DNA from: Oopsacas minuta
Lineage: Eukaryota; Animalia; Porifera
Reading direction: 5' to 3'
DNA length: 64,000 nt
Assembly (NCBI GenBank): GCA_024704765.1
Contig: JAKMXF010000088.1
Location: 248,001-312,000 of the forward strand
The notes under the pieces were generated by a model. The model ran no database searches, was not told the origin of the DNA, and saw only the letters and a list, made by a program, of their open reading frames with translations. Both the position numbers and the translations under genes were made by a program. This document shows positions 50,440 through 60,497 of this stretch, in pieces; the stretch's first letter is position 1, and each line of letters opens with the position of its first letter.

Positions 50440-51255
50440 ATGGGAGGAAAACAATCAAATCTGGGAAGGAAATGGCCTTACATAAAGAAGAAATCTCCTG
50501 TGACTACATTCGGGGTGAAAGGAGTTGGGAGAGGGGAATTTAGAGTGAACAGGGGTATCACTATAGATGAAGAACAAAGATTGTATGTAGTAGATAGGAA
50601 CAACCAGAGAATTCAGATATTCACAGATGAAGGTGAATATGTAACTGAAATACACCCAAACTTTAATACAAATTATCCCAATGATATAGCAGTTGGTGAT
50701 GGATGTATATTTGTGAGTAGTGTCCCTAACCTAATATACACATTTCAAGCTACTACAACGAATAATCTAATTAAGACTTATCTTTGGGAGATTAAAACAC
50801 CAAGAGGATTAACAGTAGACACCAATGGAGAATTGTATGTAGCTGATACATACGCTAATAGAGTTGTAGTTTTGAATTTAGAGCTAGAATGTATTCGGAA
50901 AATTGGGGAAGGATCACTTGATCGACCAACAGATGTCAAAATCCTTATGGATATAATATTTGTAGCTGATAACAATACTAGCAATACTATACATCTATTT
51001 TCCAAACTGGGAGATTTGGTGAATAGTTTTCTAAATATCAAAACTAATCCTATTATTCAAGATACATATATATGTTTCGATCTAGAGTATAATTTGATTG
51101 TGTGTTCTGTATTTAACGCATCAATAATGGTATTATCAAGTGAAGGAGTATTGATACATAAAATCAAATTAGAGGATAGTCCAAGAGGGATAGCTGTAAC
51201 AGATAATTTTCGTATTATTTGCTCAAATAACCAGAATAGTATTGTAATATTTTGA
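50440..51255 (+). CDS. Stand-alone NHL-repeat protein with an N-myristoylation-type start
   Basis: 271 aa; starts MGGKQS; NHL repeats GEF..NRGITID..LYVVDRNNQRIQIF, YPNDIAV, TPRGLTVD..LYVADT, RPTDV, SPRGIAV. Confidence 0.85.
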   Translation: MGGKQSNLGRKWPYIKKKSPVTTFGVKGVGRGEFRVNRGITIDEEQRLYVVDRNNQRIQIFTDEGEYVTEIHPNFNTNYPNDIAVGDGCIFVSSVPNLIYTFQATTTNNLIKTYLWEIKTPRGLTVDTNGELYVADTYANRVVVLNLELECIRKIGEGSLDRPTDVKILMDIIFVADNNTSNTIHLFSKLGDLVNSFLNIKTNPIIQDTYICFDLEYNLIVCSVFNASIMVLSSEGVLIHKIKLEDSPRGIAVTDNFRIICSNNQNSIVIF

Positions 51256-51699: not shown

Positions 51700-54600
51700 A
51701 TGTCTAAATCGGCGGGGAAGTCTAAGAAAACAACTAGATCTGTTTTCGGAAAATTAGCCGCTAAAGTTAAAAGTCCCGATTTTTCTAGTCCTGAGCTAAA
51801 GAGTTCACACAGTGGTGGTGGTAAACTGACATCTTTCACAGGACAGAAGACTTCTCCAGGATGGGGTGGGGGTGCTAACAAAGCTCCTGCTCCTAGAAGC
51901 AAGAAGATGGAAGCTTTTTATGGTCAGGATGAACTTTGGGAAGCGAAAACTGAGCATCTAGATAACTTCAGTTATATGAATGATGATTTAGGAATGTTTG
52001 AATCTGTATCCAATGATTCAAACTTGGAAGGCGTAGACTTGACTATTCCAACGAAAGAATCTAAATTGATGTACAAACAAATGTCAATTGATGTTAACGA
52101 ACAACTACATGATAGTGGTATAAGTACGAATAGAAGGGCTACTCTACTAAATAGAGGTCTGAAGAAATTCGTTCAATCCGTTGCTCCGCCCTCACTTAAT
52201 ATTCCCTATAATCTAGACCTGAATGAGAATGTTCCTGTTAGAGGAGTTGCTATTGTTATTTCATTACACTGGACTATACCTGACATTGAAGGAGAGATTA
52301 AACCACTGAAAGAAGCACTACGAGCATTGAAGTATGACGTCATAGGCACATACGGAGTGAGTAAACAAGATCTCCTTGATATGAAGAAAGATTGGATGAG
52401 GCAATTGCAGTCATTGAAGTATCCGTCTTTTGTTTGTGTTGTTATTGGTTCCAGTGATATAGAACAAAACTTTGTTACTACAGACAATCAACTGTTATCA
52501 CGTGATGAAATTCTACAGGGTTTGGATTCTGGATTCCCACAGTATTTACCGAAATTATTTTTCTTCAATTCACTGCTCCCTCCAACCGCTACGAATATCA
52601 CCAAAGAATTACCAAATAACACATTGTATATGCATACCTATTTCGATACACGTATCTATGGTTCAAAGGCTGTTGTTACTCATCCTTTCTTAGAAACTTT
52701 CTATGACATCATACGTACCAGAGGTAATAAAGACGAATTTCAGGAAATGGTGCGTAGAGCTAAACACGTCTGTTTATCTTCTGTCAACGATTACAAAGCA
52801 TTGAACATACGTCAACACTCCACGCTTCAACGTCCTCTTTTCCTATTGCCTGATAATCTGATCGAAGCAGAAACGAATGTTTTACAGAGCTACTTTTCAT
52901 TGAAACAAGCTTATCCTATGTCAAACACATCGAACCATGGATTAGTTGTCCTCGGACTGATTGAAGATGCTTCCTGGACACAAACAGCTAAATACCAGAA
53001 GTCTACGCGGTCTATTTATAACAACTTAAAGACTACTTTACAGTTCTACAATCTTAAAGTGTCTACATTCGAGTTGCGCAGCAAATTAGATTATAAAAAC
53101 GAGCTTTTGAGGGAAGTACGTAGAAAAAATAATCAATACGATTTGGTTATTATTATACTGCTAGGGAGTAGTACGAATGAAAATCATATCAAGTTTCGTA
53201 CAGGACCAGAGATTCTATTGATCGGTGAAGTATTGGATGATTTGCAAGTTATTGGCCCTGATATCCCCAAACTACTTTTCATATCACAACTACTCCATCT
53301 TGACTCTAGAGAGAATGTGCCATCTCTGTTACGAAATAACAAGATGCAGAGTGAAGAAAAGGCTCCATTTATCCACAATTCGTATGTATTCCATGCTAAG
53401 AATAAAATGACGTCAAATTTAGAAGGAACATTTTTGAGCTCTCTAACTGAAGCTCTTAAGTGTAAATTCCGTAAGTTGGAATTCACGAAAATAGCAAGTT
53501 ACATGCGACTGAATTCTGCGGAAAAGAATTTGCTACCCCACTTTCTAGAAATGAATAATCTAGAAAGTCCTTTGTATCTTCTTCCAGAAGAGCTAAAAAT
53601 ATCAGCTGAGCTACTGTCTCGTGGGGAGGAGTTCGCTTCCCTCTATCAAGAGGCCTTGGACGATGGGTTAGAATTGTTAAGGTTCTATCGACTAATGGTT
53701 GTCGGACCTGAGGGTGTCGGGAAGACCTCCCTTCTCCGTGCTTTGACAGGACAGCCTTTTGAAGCCAACCAGACGAGCACTCCTTTCATTGACAAGTTTG
53801 ACGTGCAGATTCATAAAATCAGCAAAGATTGGAAACAGAATGAAGATCTTGATAGCTATGCTGACAGGCTCTTAGATACGAAGGAACAGATGGCAGTGAA
53901 CTATGTAGTAGGTAAGTTGAAAGAGAATATACGAAAAGAATCAACATCAACTCTAATAGAACCTGACATGTGTCCATTAGACCTGTATGAGTTCTGTATC
54001 GATGATCCTAGTGTTTTCACTACAGAACCTAGCATTCCTATGTCCACTACCAATAACCTTGACAACCAAATCAGTGGTAATGCTGGACTGGCTACCTTAG
54101 ATAGCATTCCATCTTCCTCTAACAGTATCCTAGCTACTCAGGATAGTATGGATGTAACAAAGAGCTTTACACAGGTCTACACTACCCCTATTGTAGAAGG
54201 AGAGAAGCCTGCTATGAATCAGGAATTTGAAATTCCTCCTGACGATATAATACCTGATGAACAGTGTTCTAGGTCAAGTGTTAATAAATCACCTCCACTT
54301 CTTCCTATTGAAAGCGAAGATACCCCTCCTGTCACTTCAGTAGGTGCCGTAGTTCCACCACCATTTCCTGAGGTAAATCCCGCAGTTCTCCCTCCAGTTC
54401 ATTCTGTTAATCCTGCAATTCTTCCTCCCAATCCTTCAACAAAACCAGTAGTTTCCCCTCCTGTTCCTCCTGTAAAAGCAGCAGCTACCACTCTAGCAAT
54501 TTCGGGACTCATTCCACCTCCACCTGCTGACATGCCACCAGAATTCTTACCAAAAATTTCCCATAAGTCAATTGATTCAAACGCAACGCCTAATGATGAC

Positions 54601-57510
54601 GTAATTAAACTCGAGACTCTTGACTTAAAAGAGAACTTAATCGATATTCCAATAAACAAGATATACTCTACACTGAATCAGGACGCTGAATCTAAGAACG
54701 TAGAGCATCCAGATTTCCTAACTGCGTGGGATTTCGCTGGACAGAATTATCTCTATTGCTTCCATTCTCTATTTCTCTCTCCACGAGCTATCTACTTGTT
54801 ACTCATAGATTTAGCTGTTGAAGATTTGAACGCAGATATAAACATCCGCGAGGAACGTAAAGATAGGTTATCTCAAAGAAGTTATGCTGGTGTACCCAAA
54901 ACCTATTTAGAAGCAATCGAATTTTGGTTGAATGCGATCTACTCTGTAGCTCGTATGCCATTGTCTGAGCATTATTCACGTCATTCTAAAGTTGTATTTA
55001 TATTTTCACGAGCTGATAAGTGTGAAGAACCGAAAGCAAGAGCAATCGAACACTTTGAAACGATACAAGATTATATGATAGGTAAGAGTAATGCATTTTC
55101 TATCGTCCATATGAATATAGATGATCCAATTGTTATAAGCTGTAAGCCAGGTAGTCCATATCTCCAGAATATTAACCAAATTAAAGATCTATTGGAAGGT
55201 ATTTCAGATACAGTAGCATTTAGACAGGAAATACCGATTAGGTGGTTAGAGCTAGCAAGAGCTATTCTACATGAGAGAAGCCCATTTATAAGTCATAGAC
55301 GTTTAGAGCTTTTGTGTGAGAAACACGGCTGTACAAAAGATTTTAGCCCTCTCATTTCTCTTTTTCATGATATTGGATTCTTTTTCTACCAGAAAGGGAT
55401 TGTTATACGAGACATACAGACCTTCCTCAACATAATCTATCATGTCATTTCACCTCAATATGGTGATAAGATTGTTGAAAAGGCAAAGGATTTTGATAGA
55501 GCATTTTTAAAGCAAGATTTGCTTGATTGTCAAAACGCAGGTAGAATTACCAATAAACTTCTTAACCATATTCTGTTGTTAGATGATGATATATCTCATG
55601 TAAGAGAAGAAGTAGTACAGTTGTTGCTTACTTATGGAGTTATAATAGATTCACAAGCAGAAACTAGAAACCCATTCTACTATGTGCCTTACCTTATGAC
55701 AGGGAATTTGGAGGAATTATCAGCTGTTGATGATGATATAAATACAGCTTATATATCTGTTGATGATAAATCAAGTCAAACATTCTATCTCTACTTTCCT
55801 GATGGATTTATCCCAGCAGCTGTTTACTTCAGTCTCCTGAGTCAATGTCTTAAATTCAATAAGTTGAAAGGTCAGCCACAACCTCTTCTTGGTTTTGACT
55901 GTGCACGCTTTCAGTTGTCACACGACCATTCTTTCATCCTAGACTTTTGCTCCAATAAATGTTACATTCGTGTGTTATTCAACAGTGCATTGACTCACTC
56001 TTACCATTTAACAGAGCGATTAAATTTCTTACATTTTATACAGACTCACATATCTGAAATACAAGGCAATATCATACCGTGTGGTAACGCAGCTAAGATA
56101 GCTGTTGAGTGTAGATGCAGAGAATTGTATTTAATGAAGAAACTTGTACAACCTTGTGTATTTCTTGATCAACTGCTTTCCACACCCACAGGTTATCGTA
56201 CTTCATGGTGTCATACCTCACAAAAATACGAAGAATGGAATCATCTGTTCATTGATAAGGATTTTTACTATGACATGTTACGAAGGCAGTTTAATAGCGA
56301 TGAGTTGGCCAAATTCATTTTCGACAATATTGATGTGTTTGAGGAACATTTGAATATATTGACACTGTCGAGACAGTTGTATTTCGGTGGCCTATTCACA
56401 GCTATTGATCTGTCAATGTTGCTGTCAAAAGAGAAGAATGAAATGACAGCTGAAGGCATTCTTGCTCAGCTGCTGCATCAATCGAATAATTGGGCTCTCA
56501 GGTTCTATCTGTGTTTACAGAGAGAGACTTCACATTCTGGTCATTTGTTCTTAGTTCAATTCGTTGATTCGTTTCTGTTTCAAAAGCATTTAGAACAACA
56601 ACAGCAACAACAACAACTGGCAGCAGAAAATTCTGGTGAGGGAAAGCGAAAACGTTTCGCAGACATAAGGGGGAGTATTATGCCATCAGAAGATGAGTTT
56701 GACAGATATAAAATGAACTGTAATCCACACGGTATAGCAATGATTGTGAATATTGAAACATTTAAAGACGATGTCTCTATGACTAGGAAAGGCTCTCATC
56801 ACGATTTTATCCAACTCCGTGAGACTTTTGAGCAGCTACAGTATGTTGTATTAGGTTTTGAAGATTTGACGAAACGCCAGTTTAAGAAACAGCTTTTGAA
56901 TGTACGAAAAATGGACCATCATAAATATGATTCGTTCATATGTGTAATCATGTCCCATGGTGATGAGAAAGATAACGTTATAACTCATGACAAACTAAAG
57001 ATTAGTAAACAGGAAATACTCAATGAGTTTAAACCTGAGTACTGTCCTGGGTTGATTAAGAAGCCGAAAATATTTATTTTTCAAGCATGCAGAGGATCGA
57101 AAAATGAATTTGAGCCAGCAATTGGAGATGATGTTGATGGTGTAGAACACACAGAACCAGATCTCACAAACGAAGGAGAAGACGACTTGATTCTGACTGA
57201 TGAACTATTCTTGACCCGAGAAGATCCTTCAGTCAAACTAATTACCAACTACGACAGATCAATCACAGTCCACCACCAGAGTGATACCTTCATTGGCAAT
57301 TCTACTGTACAAAACTATGTATCATATCGTGATCCATCAAAAGGATCGATGTTCATACAATCTTTCTGTAAAGTTATACAATACACACGATATGAGGAGT
57401 TCCAACATATCATGAATGAAGTTCGTCGACGTGTATCAATGCTTTCCAAGAAGTATGTACAGTGCACTGAGGATATAAACCATCTTACTGCTAAATTGTA
57501 TTTCTTCTAA
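51700..57510 (+). CDS. ROCO-caspase fusion: two degenerate caspase domains, Roc, COR, death-fold-like segment, intact caspase (1,936 aa)
   Basis: P-loop GPEGVGKTS (53704), WDFAGQ (54727), EAIEFWLNAI, COR start EIPIRWLELAR (55228); caspase SHG (56953) and QACRG (57082), ending LYFF. The N-terminal repeats have caspase-fold framework motifs but no catalytic residues. Confidence 0.9.
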   Translation: MSKSAGKSKKTTRSVFGKLAAKVKSPDFSSPELKSSHSGGGKLTSFTGQKTSPGWGGGANKAPAPRSKKMEAFYGQDELWEAKTEHLDNFSYMNDDLGMFESVSNDSNLEGVDLTIPTKESKLMYKQMSIDVNEQLHDSGISTNRRATLLNRGLKKFVQSVAPPSLNIPYNLDLNENVPVRGVAIVISLHWTIPDIEGEIKPLKEALRALKYDVIGTYGVSKQDLLDMKKDWMRQLQSLKYPSFVCVVIGSSDIEQNFVTTDNQLLSRDEILQGLDSGFPQYLPKLFFFNSLLPPTATNITKELPNNTLYMHTYFDTRIYGSKAVVTHPFLETFYDIIRTRGNKDEFQEMVRRAKHVCLSSVNDYKALNIRQHSTLQRPLFLLPDNLIEAETNVLQSYFSLKQAYPMSNTSNHGLVVLGLIEDASWTQTAKYQKSTRSIYNNLKTTLQFYNLKVSTFELRSKLDYKNELLREVRRKNNQYDLVIIILLGSSTNENHIKFRTGPEILLIGEVLDDLQVIGPDIPKLLFISQLLHLDSRENVPSLLRNNKMQSEEKAPFIHNSYVFHAKNKMTSNLEGTFLSSLTEALKCKFRKLEFTKIASYMRLNSAEKNLLPHFLEMNNLESPLYLLPEELKISAELLSRGEEFASLYQEALDDGLELLRFYRLMVVGPEGVGKTSLLRALTGQPFEANQTSTPFIDKFDVQIHKISKDWKQNEDLDSYADRLLDTKEQMAVNYVVGKLKENIRKESTSTLIEPDMCPLDLYEFCIDDPSVFTTEPSIPMSTTNNLDNQISGNAGLATLDSIPSSSNSILATQDSMDVTKSFTQVYTTPIVEGEKPAMNQEFEIPPDDIIPDEQCSRSSVNKSPPLLPIESEDTPPVTSVGAVVPPPFPEVNPAVLPPVHSVNPAILPPNPSTKPVVSPPVPPVKAAATTLAISGLIPPPPADMPPEFLPKISHKSIDSNATPNDDVIKLETLDLKENLIDIPINKIYSTLNQDAESKNVEHPDFLTAWDFAGQNYLYCFHSLFLSPRAIYLLLIDLAVEDLNADINIREERKDRLSQRSYAGVPKTYLEAIEFWLNAIYSVARMPLSEHYSRHSKVVFIFSRADKCEEPKARAIEHFETIQDYMIGKSNAFSIVHMNIDDPIVISCKPGSPYLQNINQIKDLLEGISDTVAFRQEIPIRWLELARAILHERSPFISHRRLELLCEKHGCTKDFSPLISLFHDIGFFFYQKGIVIRDIQTFLNIIYHVISPQYGDKIVEKAKDFDRAFLKQDLLDCQNAGRITNKLLNHILLLDDDISHVREEVVQLLLTYGVIIDSQAETRNPFYYVPYLMTGNLEELSAVDDDINTAYISVDDKSSQTFYLYFPDGFIPAAVYFSLLSQCLKFNKLKGQPQPLLGFDCARFQLSHDHSFILDFCSNKCYIRVLFNSALTHSYHLTERLNFLHFIQTHISEIQGNIIPCGNAAKIAVECRCRELYLMKKLVQPCVFLDQLLSTPTGYRTSWCHTSQKYEEWNHLFIDKDFYYDMLRRQFNSDELAKFIFDNIDVFEEHLNILTLSRQLYFGGLFTAIDLSMLLSKEKNEMTAEGILAQLLHQSNNWALRFYLCLQRETSHSGHLFLVQFVDSFLFQKHLEQQQQQQQLAAENSGEGKRKRFADIRGSIMPSEDEFDRYKMNCNPHGIAMIVNIETFKDDVSMTRKGSHHDFIQLRETFEQLQYVVLGFEDLTKRQFKKQLLNVRKMDHHKYDSFICVIMSHGDEKDNVITHDKLKISKQEILNEFKPEYCPGLIKKPKIFIFQACRGSKNEFEPAIGDDVDGVEHTEPDLTNEGEDDLILTDELFLTREDPSVKLITNYDRSITVHHQSDTFIGNSTVQNYVSYRDPSKGSMFIQSFCKVIQYTRYEEFQHIMNEVRRRVSMLSKKYVQCTEDINHLTAKLYFF

Positions 57511-58181: not shown

Positions 58182-60497
58182 TTACACATCCAATTGTGGG
58201 TTCTCATAGAAATTCCCAGTACAATTTGCATCATCTAACTCCCCATACACGATAGTAGGGAAAGCAGGTTGTTCTTCATTCCGTACCAATGTATTACCAG
58301 TAGACACGTATTCGTAGAATGGATTTAGACTCTCCACTTTGTCATCTCTACCTTTACCTGGTATTTTGTGTGGATTAGGTATATCATCATCCATGGGAGA
58401 CATTTCAACGTATGTAGCTTCATTGAGTTTGTTTGTATAGGGCAATTGTTGTGAAGTAGATGTGTAATGATGTACAACTTCTCCAGGACAATTATTCGAA
58501 CTAGTAACATCTGCAGATTTTTTCTGTTTAAAACAGATGCATAAAATCAAACAGATTATCGATTGGATTACCAACAACAAAATGAGTACAATTATGATAC
58601 AAATAGTAGCGATTGATGTGCTCGGGTTTGATAAAATGGAATCAAACATTTCAAGTGGAAACTCAGTAGTTTGAACATTCACTGACTGGCAATGATGGAA
58701 ATCAGGAGCTGTAAAATTGAATCCTTCGTAACATGAGCAGAAATAGTTACCTATAGTGTTGTAACATATCTGGTCGCAACCTGCATTCGCCACACTACAC
58801 TCGTCAATGTCAATACAACTAATATTGCTAATCTGTGAAAACCCAGGCCAGCAATAGCAGTTGTAGCTGCCAATGTTATTTTCACAATACCCATTGCATG
58901 TTATTCCAGGCTCCTCACATTCGTTGACGTCACTACAATGTGTAAAATTCTCTAATGCATATCCGGGGATGCAAGAACAGGAATAAGAGCCTATCGAGTT
59001 CTCACAATTCTGTTCACATTCTCCATTATCTTGCTGACATTCATTAATATCAACGCATTGTGAGAAATCTACCCAATCAAACCCGGAGTAGCAAGAGCAT
59101 TCGTAAGAGCCTATCGAGTTCTCACAATTCTGTTGACAGCCTCCATTGTCTATCTCGCATTCATTAATGTCGATGCATTTCGTACAAGTTTCTGACATTT
59201 GCAGGCCTAAATTACATCCACATCCAGACAGATCATCTGTTATGCTTACAGTAGAATTCTGACAGTGTTGCTCTACTACACATTCCCCTGTTGCTATCAT
59301 TCTGTGATCTTCTGGACAGCAACAGAATTGTGATAGATAACTGTTCTGACAAACTTGATTGTATGGACACACTATTGAATTGTTGAAACACTCAAACTCT
59401 ACCAAAGGACTACAACTACTGTATGTTACGGGTAAACTAGCATTATTACCATTCAATCCAGCAGGAGACGAACAAATAGCATCTTGTATTACTATCCCAT
59501 ACATAGATACGAAAGAGAGCCATTGTAGTTCGCAGTCACATGTAAAAGGATTATTGGTTAGTTCTAAGTACGTGAGGCTATTTAATTGTTGGAATGGAAA
59601 TGGATTCAATGTTGTATAGCCATTATTTCTCAAGAACAGAATTCTCAACATGTTTAACGTTCTTAAAACGTTCACTGGAAAGTATTGGTTCTCATCTACA
59701 ATCAAAAGCGTAAGATTATCCAGTCCATAGAATGAATCCGGAGAAGCAGTTGTAATAGTATTATTAGCTAAAATTAGATTATCCAAGTTGGTTAAGTTCC
59801 CAAAGACGCGAGCAGGCAAATGTTGAATTTGGTTATCTTCTAAATTTAATGATGTTAACTCACTCATTCCGTTGAAAGCTTCTTGTTCGATGGATATTAT
59901 TCCTGAATTCGTCAACCACAAACGGCTCATAGAACTGAATGCTTCTGTAAAAGACTCATTCAATGCGAATTCTTGTCCAATATCAATCGATATCGATAGA
60001 GATATTAATTTATTACTGAAAGATGGCAAGGAGTTGAAGATTAGCTTCACTTTGCTAGTAACAGTAGTGACATTAGGAAAAAACTCGAAAAAGTTTGGTT
60101 GAAGTAGGATAAAATCATCATCCAAAAACCATATATAATTTACTGAAGGGTGGGATTTGACTGAGCTAACCTGGAAAATGTTACCAGGAAAAGCAAAAAT
60201 GAATAGTATCCTTGTAATGTATGGGCCAATGTCTAACTCTACCGTCAGAGGAACATCGAAAGAAGCGTATTTGTAAATCTGGAGTACTGTTTTATGACTG
60301 TATTCCTCGCTTGTACAATTTCTAATTACATTTCTTATTAATTCTGTATTCTCTCCCTCGAATATATCACACCACCAATAGTCAGTGGGTGTGCTTGAAA
60401 GATCTCCGCAAGATATGATGGGGGTTGAATACGAACAAGTCTCAAGCCTGCAAACCGTAAAGAACCCCAGAAGAACTACTAGATGAAACAAATTCAT
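58182..60497 (-). CDS. Type I membrane receptor: signal peptide, LRRs, LRRCT, EGF array (4 clear cbEGF), TM, Tyr-rich tail without TIR
   Basis: 771 aa; LTSLNLEDNQI, LDNLILANNTI, NPFTCDCELQWL; DINEC/DVNEC/DIDEC repeats; TM IATICIIIVLILLLVIQSIICLILCICF. Confidence 0.9.
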   Translation of the reverse strand: MNLFHLVVLLGFFTVCRLETCSYSTPIISCGDLSSTPTDYWWCDIFEGENTELIRNVIRNCTSEEYSHKTVLQIYKYASFDVPLTVELDIGPYITRILFIFAFPGNIFQVSSVKSHPSVNYIWFLDDDFILLQPNFFEFFPNVTTVTSKVKLIFNSLPSFSNKLISLSISIDIGQEFALNESFTEAFSSMSRLWLTNSGIISIEQEAFNGMSELTSLNLEDNQIQHLPARVFGNLTNLDNLILANNTITTASPDSFYGLDNLTLLIVDENQYFPVNVLRTLNMLRILFLRNNGYTTLNPFPFQQLNSLTYLELTNNPFTCDCELQWLSFVSMYGIVIQDAICSSPAGLNGNNASLPVTYSSCSPLVEFECFNNSIVCPYNQVCQNSYLSQFCCCPEDHRMIATGECVVEQHCQNSTVSITDDLSGCGCNLGLQMSETCTKCIDINECEIDNGGCQQNCENSIGSYECSCYSGFDWVDFSQCVDINECQQDNGECEQNCENSIGSYSCSCIPGYALENFTHCSDVNECEEPGITCNGYCENNIGSYNCYCWPGFSQISNISCIDIDECSVANAGCDQICYNTIGNYFCSCYEGFNFTAPDFHHCQSVNVQTTEFPLEMFDSILSNPSTSIATICIIIVLILLLVIQSIICLILCICFKQKKSADVTSSNNCPGEVVHHYTSTSQQLPYTNKLNEATYVEMSPMDDDIPNPHKIPGKGRDDKVESLNPFYEYVSTGNTLVRNEEQPAFPTIVYGELDDANCTGNFYENPQLDV

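Follow-up and report, generated by a model that had tools for sequence, protein, structure and literature searches.

Two tandem, catalytically dead domains of predicted caspase fold at the N-terminus of a ROCO-caspase from the glass sponge Oopsacas minuta

Introduction

Caspase domains dimerize through strand β6 and helix α5, and initiator caspases are switched on by dimerization. A protein of the glass sponge Oopsacas minuta (Hexactinellida) raises the question of why a chain that ends in an intact caspase should also carry, near its N-terminus, two caspase-like segments that lack the catalytic residues. The protein, referred to here as P0001, is encoded in the window analyzed in this work, a stretch of 64,000 nucleotides from contig JAKMXF010000088.1 (positions 248,001 to 312,000, forward strand), by one unbroken open reading frame (ORF) of 1936 residues at window positions 51700-57510 (+); an identical protein has been called on JAKMXF010000088.1 in assembly GCA_024704765.1. 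The JAKMXF accession is the O. minuta genome of Santini et al. 2023. A preliminary description of this DNA, made from the letters alone, had read the two segments as a pair of dead caspase domains that might fold as an intramolecular pseudo-dimer, regulate the C-terminal caspase, or serve as a decoy for pathogen caspase inhibitors.

Here, we analyze the homology, predicted structure, residue losses, constraint, and phylogeny of the two segments, named D1 and D2. The explanation that we favor, and regard as reasonably probable though far from secure, is that D1 and D2 are true caspase-fold domains which have lost the catalytic dyad and the S1 arginines, are held by purifying selection, and most likely act as built-in dimer partners.

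Sequence relationship of D1 and D2 to caspases

Both segments lie where the preliminary description had placed them, in frame within the single ORF. Their features, in window coordinates, are as follows.

52195..52854, + strand: D1, first pseudo-caspase domain, residues 166-385 (homology to the protein's own caspase, predicted fold, constraint)
52450..52452, + strand: S251, the catalytic-His position of D1 (GSS in place of SHG)
52573..52575, + strand: L292, the catalytic-Cys position of D1 (NSLLP in place of QACRG)
52855..52896, + strand: short, variable D1-D2 linker, residues 386-399 (identity 0.32)
52897..53595, + strand: D2, second pseudo-caspase domain, residues 400-632 (homology to D1, predicted fold)
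53167..53169, + strand: S490, the catalytic-His position of D2 (from the alignment)
53290..53295, + strand: L531-L532, the catalytic-Cys position of D2 (which Leu depends on the alignment)

The framework motifs reported earlier are all present, namely PYNLDL (residues 169-174), VRGVAIVISL (180-189), FVCVVIGSSD (244-253), PKLFFFNSLL (284-293), and RPLFLLP (378-384) in D1, and AYPMSN (404-409), HGLVVLGLIE (413-422), VIIILLGSST (483-492), PKLLFISQLL (523-532), and SPLYLLP (623-629) in D2. The LFLLP and LYLLP motifs had been taken for the ends of the domains; they correspond to the C-terminal LYF tail of caspases, with β6 lying before them (NIRQHSTL, residues 369-376, in D1 and HFLEMNNL, residues 614-621, in D2).

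The resemblance of D1 and D2 to caspases is far above chance. In direct comparison by BLASTP, D1 matches the C-terminal caspase of its own chain with an E-value of 2e-11 (28% identity over 119 residues), D1 matches D2 with E 9e-7, and D2 matches the C-terminal caspase with E 0.002. Profile-profile comparison of the family alignments with hhalign gives 97.7% (E 1.9e-12) for D1 and the caspase, 96.8% (E 2.8e-10, 196 columns, end to end) for D1 and D2, and 54% (E 1.3e-4) for D2 and the caspase. Submitted alone, D1 reaches Pfam Peptidase_C14 with E 0.0018 and 18.4 bits, under the gathering score of 21.4 bits, and D2 alone has no caspase match in Pfam. A hidden Markov model (HMM) built from the caspase domains of the family itself matches D1 in every orthologue, with independent E-values of 1e-6 to 4e-12, and D2 weakly. 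The assignment of D2 to the caspases therefore stands mainly on its homology to D1 and on its predicted fold.

Broader searches gave a similar picture. When 1.84 billion representative proteins were searched with a D1+D2 profile, 14 matches were obtained at E <= 1e-3, of which four are relatives of P0001 (P0004, P0007, P0008, and P0009) and the remainder are Peptidase_C14 proteins matched on their p20 region; the identity of the matched domains was checked by Pfam or by sequence for 10 of the 14 and through the HMM of the family caspase domains for the other four. A language-model search of residues 160-640, which we treat as a lead, returned caspase clusters in 29 of its 30 matches. A sequence search of the PDB with residues 151-647 gave nothing beyond matches at E 0.1, which joined D1 to the p17 subunit of caspase-3.

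Predicted fold

A model of the tandem was built from an alignment of seven family sequences that included no true caspase. It is poor overall, with a mean predicted local distance difference test score (pLDDT) of 53 and a predicted template modeling score (pTM) of 0.38, and the p10-like half of D1 has low pLDDT, β6 not being modeled. In the p20-like halves of both domains, pLDDT rises to 70-88 and the strands and helices follow the caspase order. All of the 50 best PDB matches listed by Foldseek for this model are caspase-family chains, with E-values from 6e-7, and D1 (model residues 8-199) aligns in VIA-align with procaspase-8, -3, -6, and -7 over 165-180 residues at Z scores of ~14 and root-mean-square deviations (rmsd) of 3.0-3.5.

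D2 was also modeled alone with AlphaFold2 (AF2) from 16 rows, eight D2 and eight D1 sequences, again with no true caspase among them. This model has a pLDDT of 76.7 and a pTM of 0.80 and contains the full order b1-a1-b2-a2-b3-hairpin-a3-b4-b5-a4-a5-b6. The 50 best Foldseek matches listed for it are all caspases or c-FLIP_L (E 4e-9, TM-scores up to 0.75), and a shape search of the ESM Atlas returned clusters of caspase-6-like proteins, caspase-8, and CFLAR. Independently of Foldseek, the model was compared with 48,161 PDB representatives, with the following results.

c-FLIP_L protease-like domain (3H13): Z 19.7, rmsd 2.6, 191/208 residues, the best match
Dronc: Z 19.6
Caspase-8: Z 18.9
CED-3: Z 18.9
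Caspase-4: Z 18.8
Caspase-9: Z 18.0
MALT1: Z 15.7
Metacaspase: Z 14.6
GPI8 / legumain: Z about 13

According to these models, both segments are predicted to be caspase-type (C14A) folds that are closer to caspases proper than to paracaspases or metacaspases. The earlier proposal that they would fold as caspases rather than as something else is thus borne out at the level of prediction.

Loss of the catalytic and substrate-binding residues

Equivalent positions were read from a three-way alignment that set D1 and D2 against the C-terminal caspases and that agrees with the profile-profile alignments. H1753 of the C-terminal caspase corresponds to S251 in D1 and S490 in D2, and C1797 to L292 in D1 and to L531 or L532 in D2, so that both catalytic residues are gone from both copies, His having given way to Ser and Cys to Leu, as the preliminary description had maintained. 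The four loops compare as follows.

SHG loop: SHG (H1753) in the C-terminal caspase; GSS (S251) in D1; GSS (S490) in D2
QACRG loop: QACRG (C1797) in the C-terminal caspase; NSLLP (L292) in D1; SQLLH or QLL (L531/L532) in D2
Arg179 equivalent (R of TRKGS): present in the C-terminal caspase; loop deleted in D1; Gln in D2
Arg341 equivalent (R of SYRD): present in the C-terminal caspase; non-conserved Lys in D1; Thr in D2

The set of residues that forms the S1 pocket for Asp (Arg179, Gln283, and Arg341 equivalents) is accordingly not retained in either domain. With the His-Cys dyad and the S1 arginines lost, D1 and D2 should be incapable of canonical binding or cleavage of Asp substrates. The dyad is missing in 7/7 orthologues and in the distant member P0008, and the N-terminal region of P0009, read by sequence, also appears to have none. 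The intersubunit linker, ~60-70 residues long in the live domain, is reduced to ~15 residues in D1 and ~28 residues in D2, and the p10 signature GSxFIQ persists as HPFLET in D1 and GTFLSS in D2.

Evolutionary constraint

Conservation was measured across seven orthologues that are 38-73% identical to the query in the D1-D2 region. Because synonymous sites are saturated (proportion of synonymous differences, pS, 0.7-0.9), the usable quantities are the nonsynonymous divergence (dN) alone and the bound that dN is far below its synonymous counterpart (dS).

Mean identity: D1 0.62 and D2 0.63 (1% gaps); N-terminus 0.25 (15% gaps); Roc insert 0.33; Roc/COR 0.85; caspase 0.78
dN: D1 0.15; D2 0.17; caspase 0.10; Roc 0.04; N-terminus 0.61

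The comparison points to clear purifying selection on D1 and D2, somewhat relaxed relative to the catalytic parts, dN being 1.5 to 4 times higher in the dead domains. Since both are conserved and constrained, a function is likely. Their motifs are invariant down to the orthologue that is 38% identical, and many are retained in a paralogue that is 22% identical. β6 and the tail are among the best-conserved elements (0.73-0.88). In D2 the highest values belong to b4 (0.93) and to β6, the tail, and the linker that leads to Roc (0.88-0.94), and conservation is poor (0.48) in the His loop, the counterpart of the GSSD loop of D1. In D1, the loops of the former active site (window 52450-52470 and 52549-52575; residues 250-256 and 284-292) are rich in invariant polar residues.

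Distribution and origin of the tandem

P0001 belongs to a small family that comprises seven proteins at 38-100% identity together with the more distant P0008 (1814 residues) and P0009 (1689 residues), all of which have Roc and a C-terminal caspase. The N-terminal region of P0008 matches the D1+D2 profile with E 1.8e-19, and that of P0009 matches D1+D2 in hhalign at 82% (E 1e-5). P0009 is a paralogue within O. minuta, encoded on JAKMXF010000099.1 of the same assembly (L005:2001-7070), in which the dead N-terminal pair is more diverged, and P0007 and P0008 form a matching paralogue pair from one sequencing run, SRR2064712. The occurrence of P0009 in O. minuta and of the P0007/P0008 pair in that run indicates two old paralogue lineages, with the tandem in both. 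The sources of P0007 and P0008 are 5.7 kb Logan contigs with little besides the ORF, which is the only hint of expression.

In an unrooted maximum-likelihood tree of 36 domains, D1 and D2 fall together on one side of a branch with support 96/97 and the C-terminal caspases group with support 99/98, so that the phylogenetic check suggested by the preliminary description separates the dead domains from the live ones. D1 and D2 form groups of their own (74/39 and 89/74, respectively), each with a copy from 8/8 sampled proteins, including the divergent P0008, as would fit a duplication into D1 and D2 that preceded the split of the paralogues. Branches in the tree are long, and attraction between fast-evolving dead domains is possible. 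As one element of our favored explanation, and at the same measured level of confidence, we suggest that the caspase-like domain whose duplication gave rise to D1 and D2 had itself diverged beforehand.

Layout of the protein and its locus

The remaining features of P0001 are listed below in window coordinates.

51700..57510, + strand: whole ORF of P0001, running from a probably disordered N-terminus through D1, D2, the split Roc, and a COR-like region to the C-terminal caspase
51700..52194, + strand: N-terminal region, residues 1-165, low complexity, poorly conserved, probably disordered
53689..53832, + strand: N-terminal part of the Roc GTPase, P-loop GPEGVGKT at residues 669-676 (Pfam, motif)
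53980..54729, + strand: Pro/Ser-rich insert within Roc, residues ~761-1010 (poor conservation)
54727-54744, + strand: DxxG motif WDFAGQ, overlapping the last residue of the Roc insert
55234..55470, + strand: COR-A-like stretch, residues 1179-1257 (sub-cut-off Pfam score)
56704..57507, + strand: intact C-terminal caspase, residues 1669-1936 (Pfam, catalytic motifs, long acidic intersubunit linker)
56956-56958, + strand: H1753, in SHG of the C-terminal caspase (motif)
57088-57090, + strand: C1797, in QACRG of the C-terminal caspase (motif)

The C-terminal caspase is recognized by Pfam as Peptidase_C14 over residues 1678-1934 with E 6e-50. Its intersubunit linker (residues 1800-1865) is ~60-70 residues long, very acidic, and rich in Asp, with an identity of 0.41 at residues 1801-1840; being long, acidic, Asp-rich, and poorly conserved, it fits sites of auto-processing. 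Roc, from residue 664, scores 42.5-45.7 bits against PF08477 (cut-off 27 bits) and has both the P-loop and DxxG. It is split, with ~330 residues from GPEGVGKT to WDFAGQ (window 53704-54744, residues 669-1015), and the insert at residues ~761-1010 is rich in insertions and deletions (identity 0.33, 24% gaps). The Pfam match to COR-A at residues 1179-1257 reaches 19.5-22.7 bits against a cut-off of 35.3 bits.

Pfam scans of the whole protein and of residues 1-165 found neither a DED nor any other death-fold family, and residues 1-165 match no Pfam family. Between COR and the caspase, residues ~1531-1632 (window 56290-56595) make up a conserved, helical stretch with a death-fold-like pattern by eye; for a CARD or other death fold at residues 1499-1668 there was no support from Pfam, PDB-sequence, or Atlas searches. 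A run of seven Gln (residues 1633-1639, window 56596-56616) stands directly upstream of the caspase domain.

The gene is flanked upstream by an NHL-repeat ORF (50440-51255, +) and downstream by a gene for a 771-residue LRR/EGF protein (58182-60497, -). The same order of neighbors, an NHL ORF and a gene for an LRR and EGF protein of ~771 residues, is found at the locus of a relative (L004), which indicates that the locus of the ROCO-caspase is stable, syntenic, and single-copy and does not represent a mobile insertion.

Comparison with known systems

Several known proteins share one or another aspect of this architecture. c-FLIP_L (CFLAR; 3H13 / 3H11), the best structural match of D2, likewise has a caspase fold without the catalytic Cys, and works by β6 pairing with an active caspase (PMC4715348; PMC12198278). 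It is, however, a protein of its own, which carries two DEDs besides a single dead domain and acts in trans, whereas P0001 has two dead domains, no DED, and the active caspase and a GTPase in the same chain; the identity between D2 and c-FLIP_L is ~14%, which does not imply orthology. Caspase-X of the coral Acropora (AmCaspase Xa-Xd) combines in one chain, as P0001 does, an active caspase at the C-terminus with an N-terminal caspase-like domain that lacks His and Cys. Removal of its dead domain raised killing in HeLa cells, and the dead domain was modeled on the β6 dimer face (Moya et al. 2016, PMC4715348), which makes caspase-X the nearest functional precedent for regulation in cis. It differs from P0001, as compared by description, in having 721 residues, one dead domain adjoining the live one, and no GTPase. 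In mammalian caspase-16, the prodomain derives from a duplicated caspase domain that has lost its catalytic site, and an intramolecular pseudo-dimer has been proposed (Eckhart et al. 2025, PMC12198278); this single dead domain is adjacent to the live one, is confined to mammals, and clearly stems from an independent duplication.

The ROCO proteins (LRRK2, DAPK1, MFHAS1, and bacterial Roco) resemble P0001 in that a COR-like region comes after the Roc GTPase. P0001 departs from them in having no detected kinase, LRR, or ankyrin repeats, a pair of dead caspase domains at the N-terminus, a caspase as its output, a COR match under the Pfam cut-off, and a Roc insert of ~250 residues. Proteins with multiple caspase domains (Casp4 of A. 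digitifera, with four, and P0010-P0012) likewise form caspase arrays in which some copies are degenerate, but they lack a GTPase module, and in the tree their domains do not group with D1 and D2. Among them, P0010 (L008:1001-3355, GCA_040412425.1 CM080530.1), P0011, P0012, and also P0018, from another animal or animals, contain two or three consecutive Peptidase_C14 domains. Of those in P0010, the first alone keeps both His and Cys, with GCG/NSCCS in the second and GYA/FHMTV in the third; arrays that mix live with dead caspase domains thus seem to recur.

P0001 differs from the known dead-plus-live proteins in its two tandem dead domains, in the ~1030 residues of Roc-COR spacing, and in its occurrence in a glass sponge. 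No matching description turned up in a literature search that covered fusions of ROCO proteins with caspases, pseudo-caspases in tandem, and the caspases of O. minuta, and the O. minuta genome paper (Santini et al. 2023) does not mention caspases.

A model for the dead pair and its alternatives

By analogy with these systems, D1 and D2 probably regulate the C-terminal caspase from within its own chain. They would do so by pairing with each other or by covering the surface through which the C-terminal caspase dimerizes; in both cases, the ability of the active domain to dimerize when Roc-COR changes state or dimerizes would depend on them. Such a scheme would be a cis version of the c-FLIP_L:procaspase-8 pair and of the dead-plus-live pairs in caspase-X and caspase-16. 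As β6 is the dimer face in caspases (PMC4715348), we count the conservation of β6 and the tail in favor of the dimer-partner explanation. A more specific form of it, in which D1 and D2 join in an intramolecular pseudo-dimer and gate, in the manner of a built-in c-FLIP, a caspase that the GTPase switches, is put forward tentatively, and we hold it to be possible but doubtful.

A number of observations weigh against this explanation. D2 has no Pfam match of its own and is tied to caspases weakly by direct sequence comparison. The analysis yielded no direct evidence of contact of D1 with D2 or of either with the caspase, and the tandem model (pLDDT 53, pTM 0.38) is of too low a confidence to speak for or against a D1:D2 pseudo-dimer. 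D1 and D2 adjoin each other and Roc-COR lies between D2 and the live caspase, so that ~1030 residues separate the end of D2 (residue 632) from the start of the active caspase (residue 1669), whereas the corresponding domains are adjacent in caspase-X and caspase-16. Finally, conservation in D1 peaks at the former active-site loops, GSSDxEQ(NF) reaching 0.83 and b4 with the former Cys site, PKLFFFNS, 0.94, which hints at a new binding surface other than β6.

The last observation also speaks for the main alternative, which we judge improbable yet deserving of serious attention, namely that a D1:D2 pseudo-dimer is an N-terminal input or ligand-binding module that replaces LRR or ankyrin repeats and binds a partner through its remodeled cleft, with no direct contact to the C-terminal caspase. 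In its favor, the most conserved loops of D1 hold invariant polar residues (GSSDxEQNF...DN), the pair occupies the position at which ROCO proteins usually carry interaction repeats, and two adjacent caspase folds joined by a linker of ~15-30 residues could pair. The S1 pocket is destroyed, however, so that the ligand would not be a canonical Asp peptide, and no partner is known. The earlier idea of a decoy, in which D1 and D2 would absorb or sense pathogen inhibitors aimed at the active caspase, draws on the general principle of immune receptors that have a decoy built in and on the evolution of D1 and D2 at 1.5 to 4 times the rate of the catalytic parts. It is weakened by the absence of the catalytic Cys and His and of both S1 arginines, the whole S1 pocket having gone, because mechanism-based inhibitors of the p35 and serpin types need the nucleophile and Asp recognition; moreover, dN is far below dS and no hypervariable surface is seen. 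We consider the decoy very improbable.

It is harder still to credit that the two segments are chance resemblances or the functionless, decaying relics of old internal duplications, as the lost catalytic residues and the invisibility of D2 to Pfam might suggest. The resemblance is statistically not chance by BLASTP, hhalign, or the search of 1.84e9 proteins; both domains are nearly free of insertions and deletions and keep 62-63% identity across orthologues that are saturated at synonymous sites; the motifs persist, as noted, to the 38%-identical orthologue and in part to the 22%-identical paralogue; and the model of D2 is confident. On the homology statistics, the constraint, and this model, we reject both chance similarity and decay. 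Nor do we give appreciable weight to a residual, non-canonical catalysis by the Ser residues that replace SHG, for which the invariance of GSSD in D1 could be cited. Leu at the position of the nucleophile, a loop without His, and the loss of the S1 pocket lead us to reject it, the equivalent loop of D2 is poorly conserved, and we know of no such Ser-based chemistry for the caspase fold.

Implications

Caspase activation depends on which caspase-fold domains pair with each other, and in vertebrates dead paralogues, c-FLIP_L among them, have a key part in its regulation. In the hexactinellid chain described here, a live caspase is joined to a GTPase switch and to a pair of dead caspase domains under constraint, and this layout is found in two old paralogue lineages. 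Should a D1:D2 pseudo-dimer prove to be the gate, one sponge polypeptide would combine a sensor or switch (Roc-COR), a regulator (D1:D2), and an executioner, and control of caspases by dead paralogues would be present in a lineage among the earliest to branch within the animals, independently of c-FLIP. More generally, if the dead domains gate the live one, the protein would offer a compact and experimentally tractable model of how a pseudo-enzyme controls a cell-death protease, and such control would have arisen repeatedly, in sponge, coral, and mammal.

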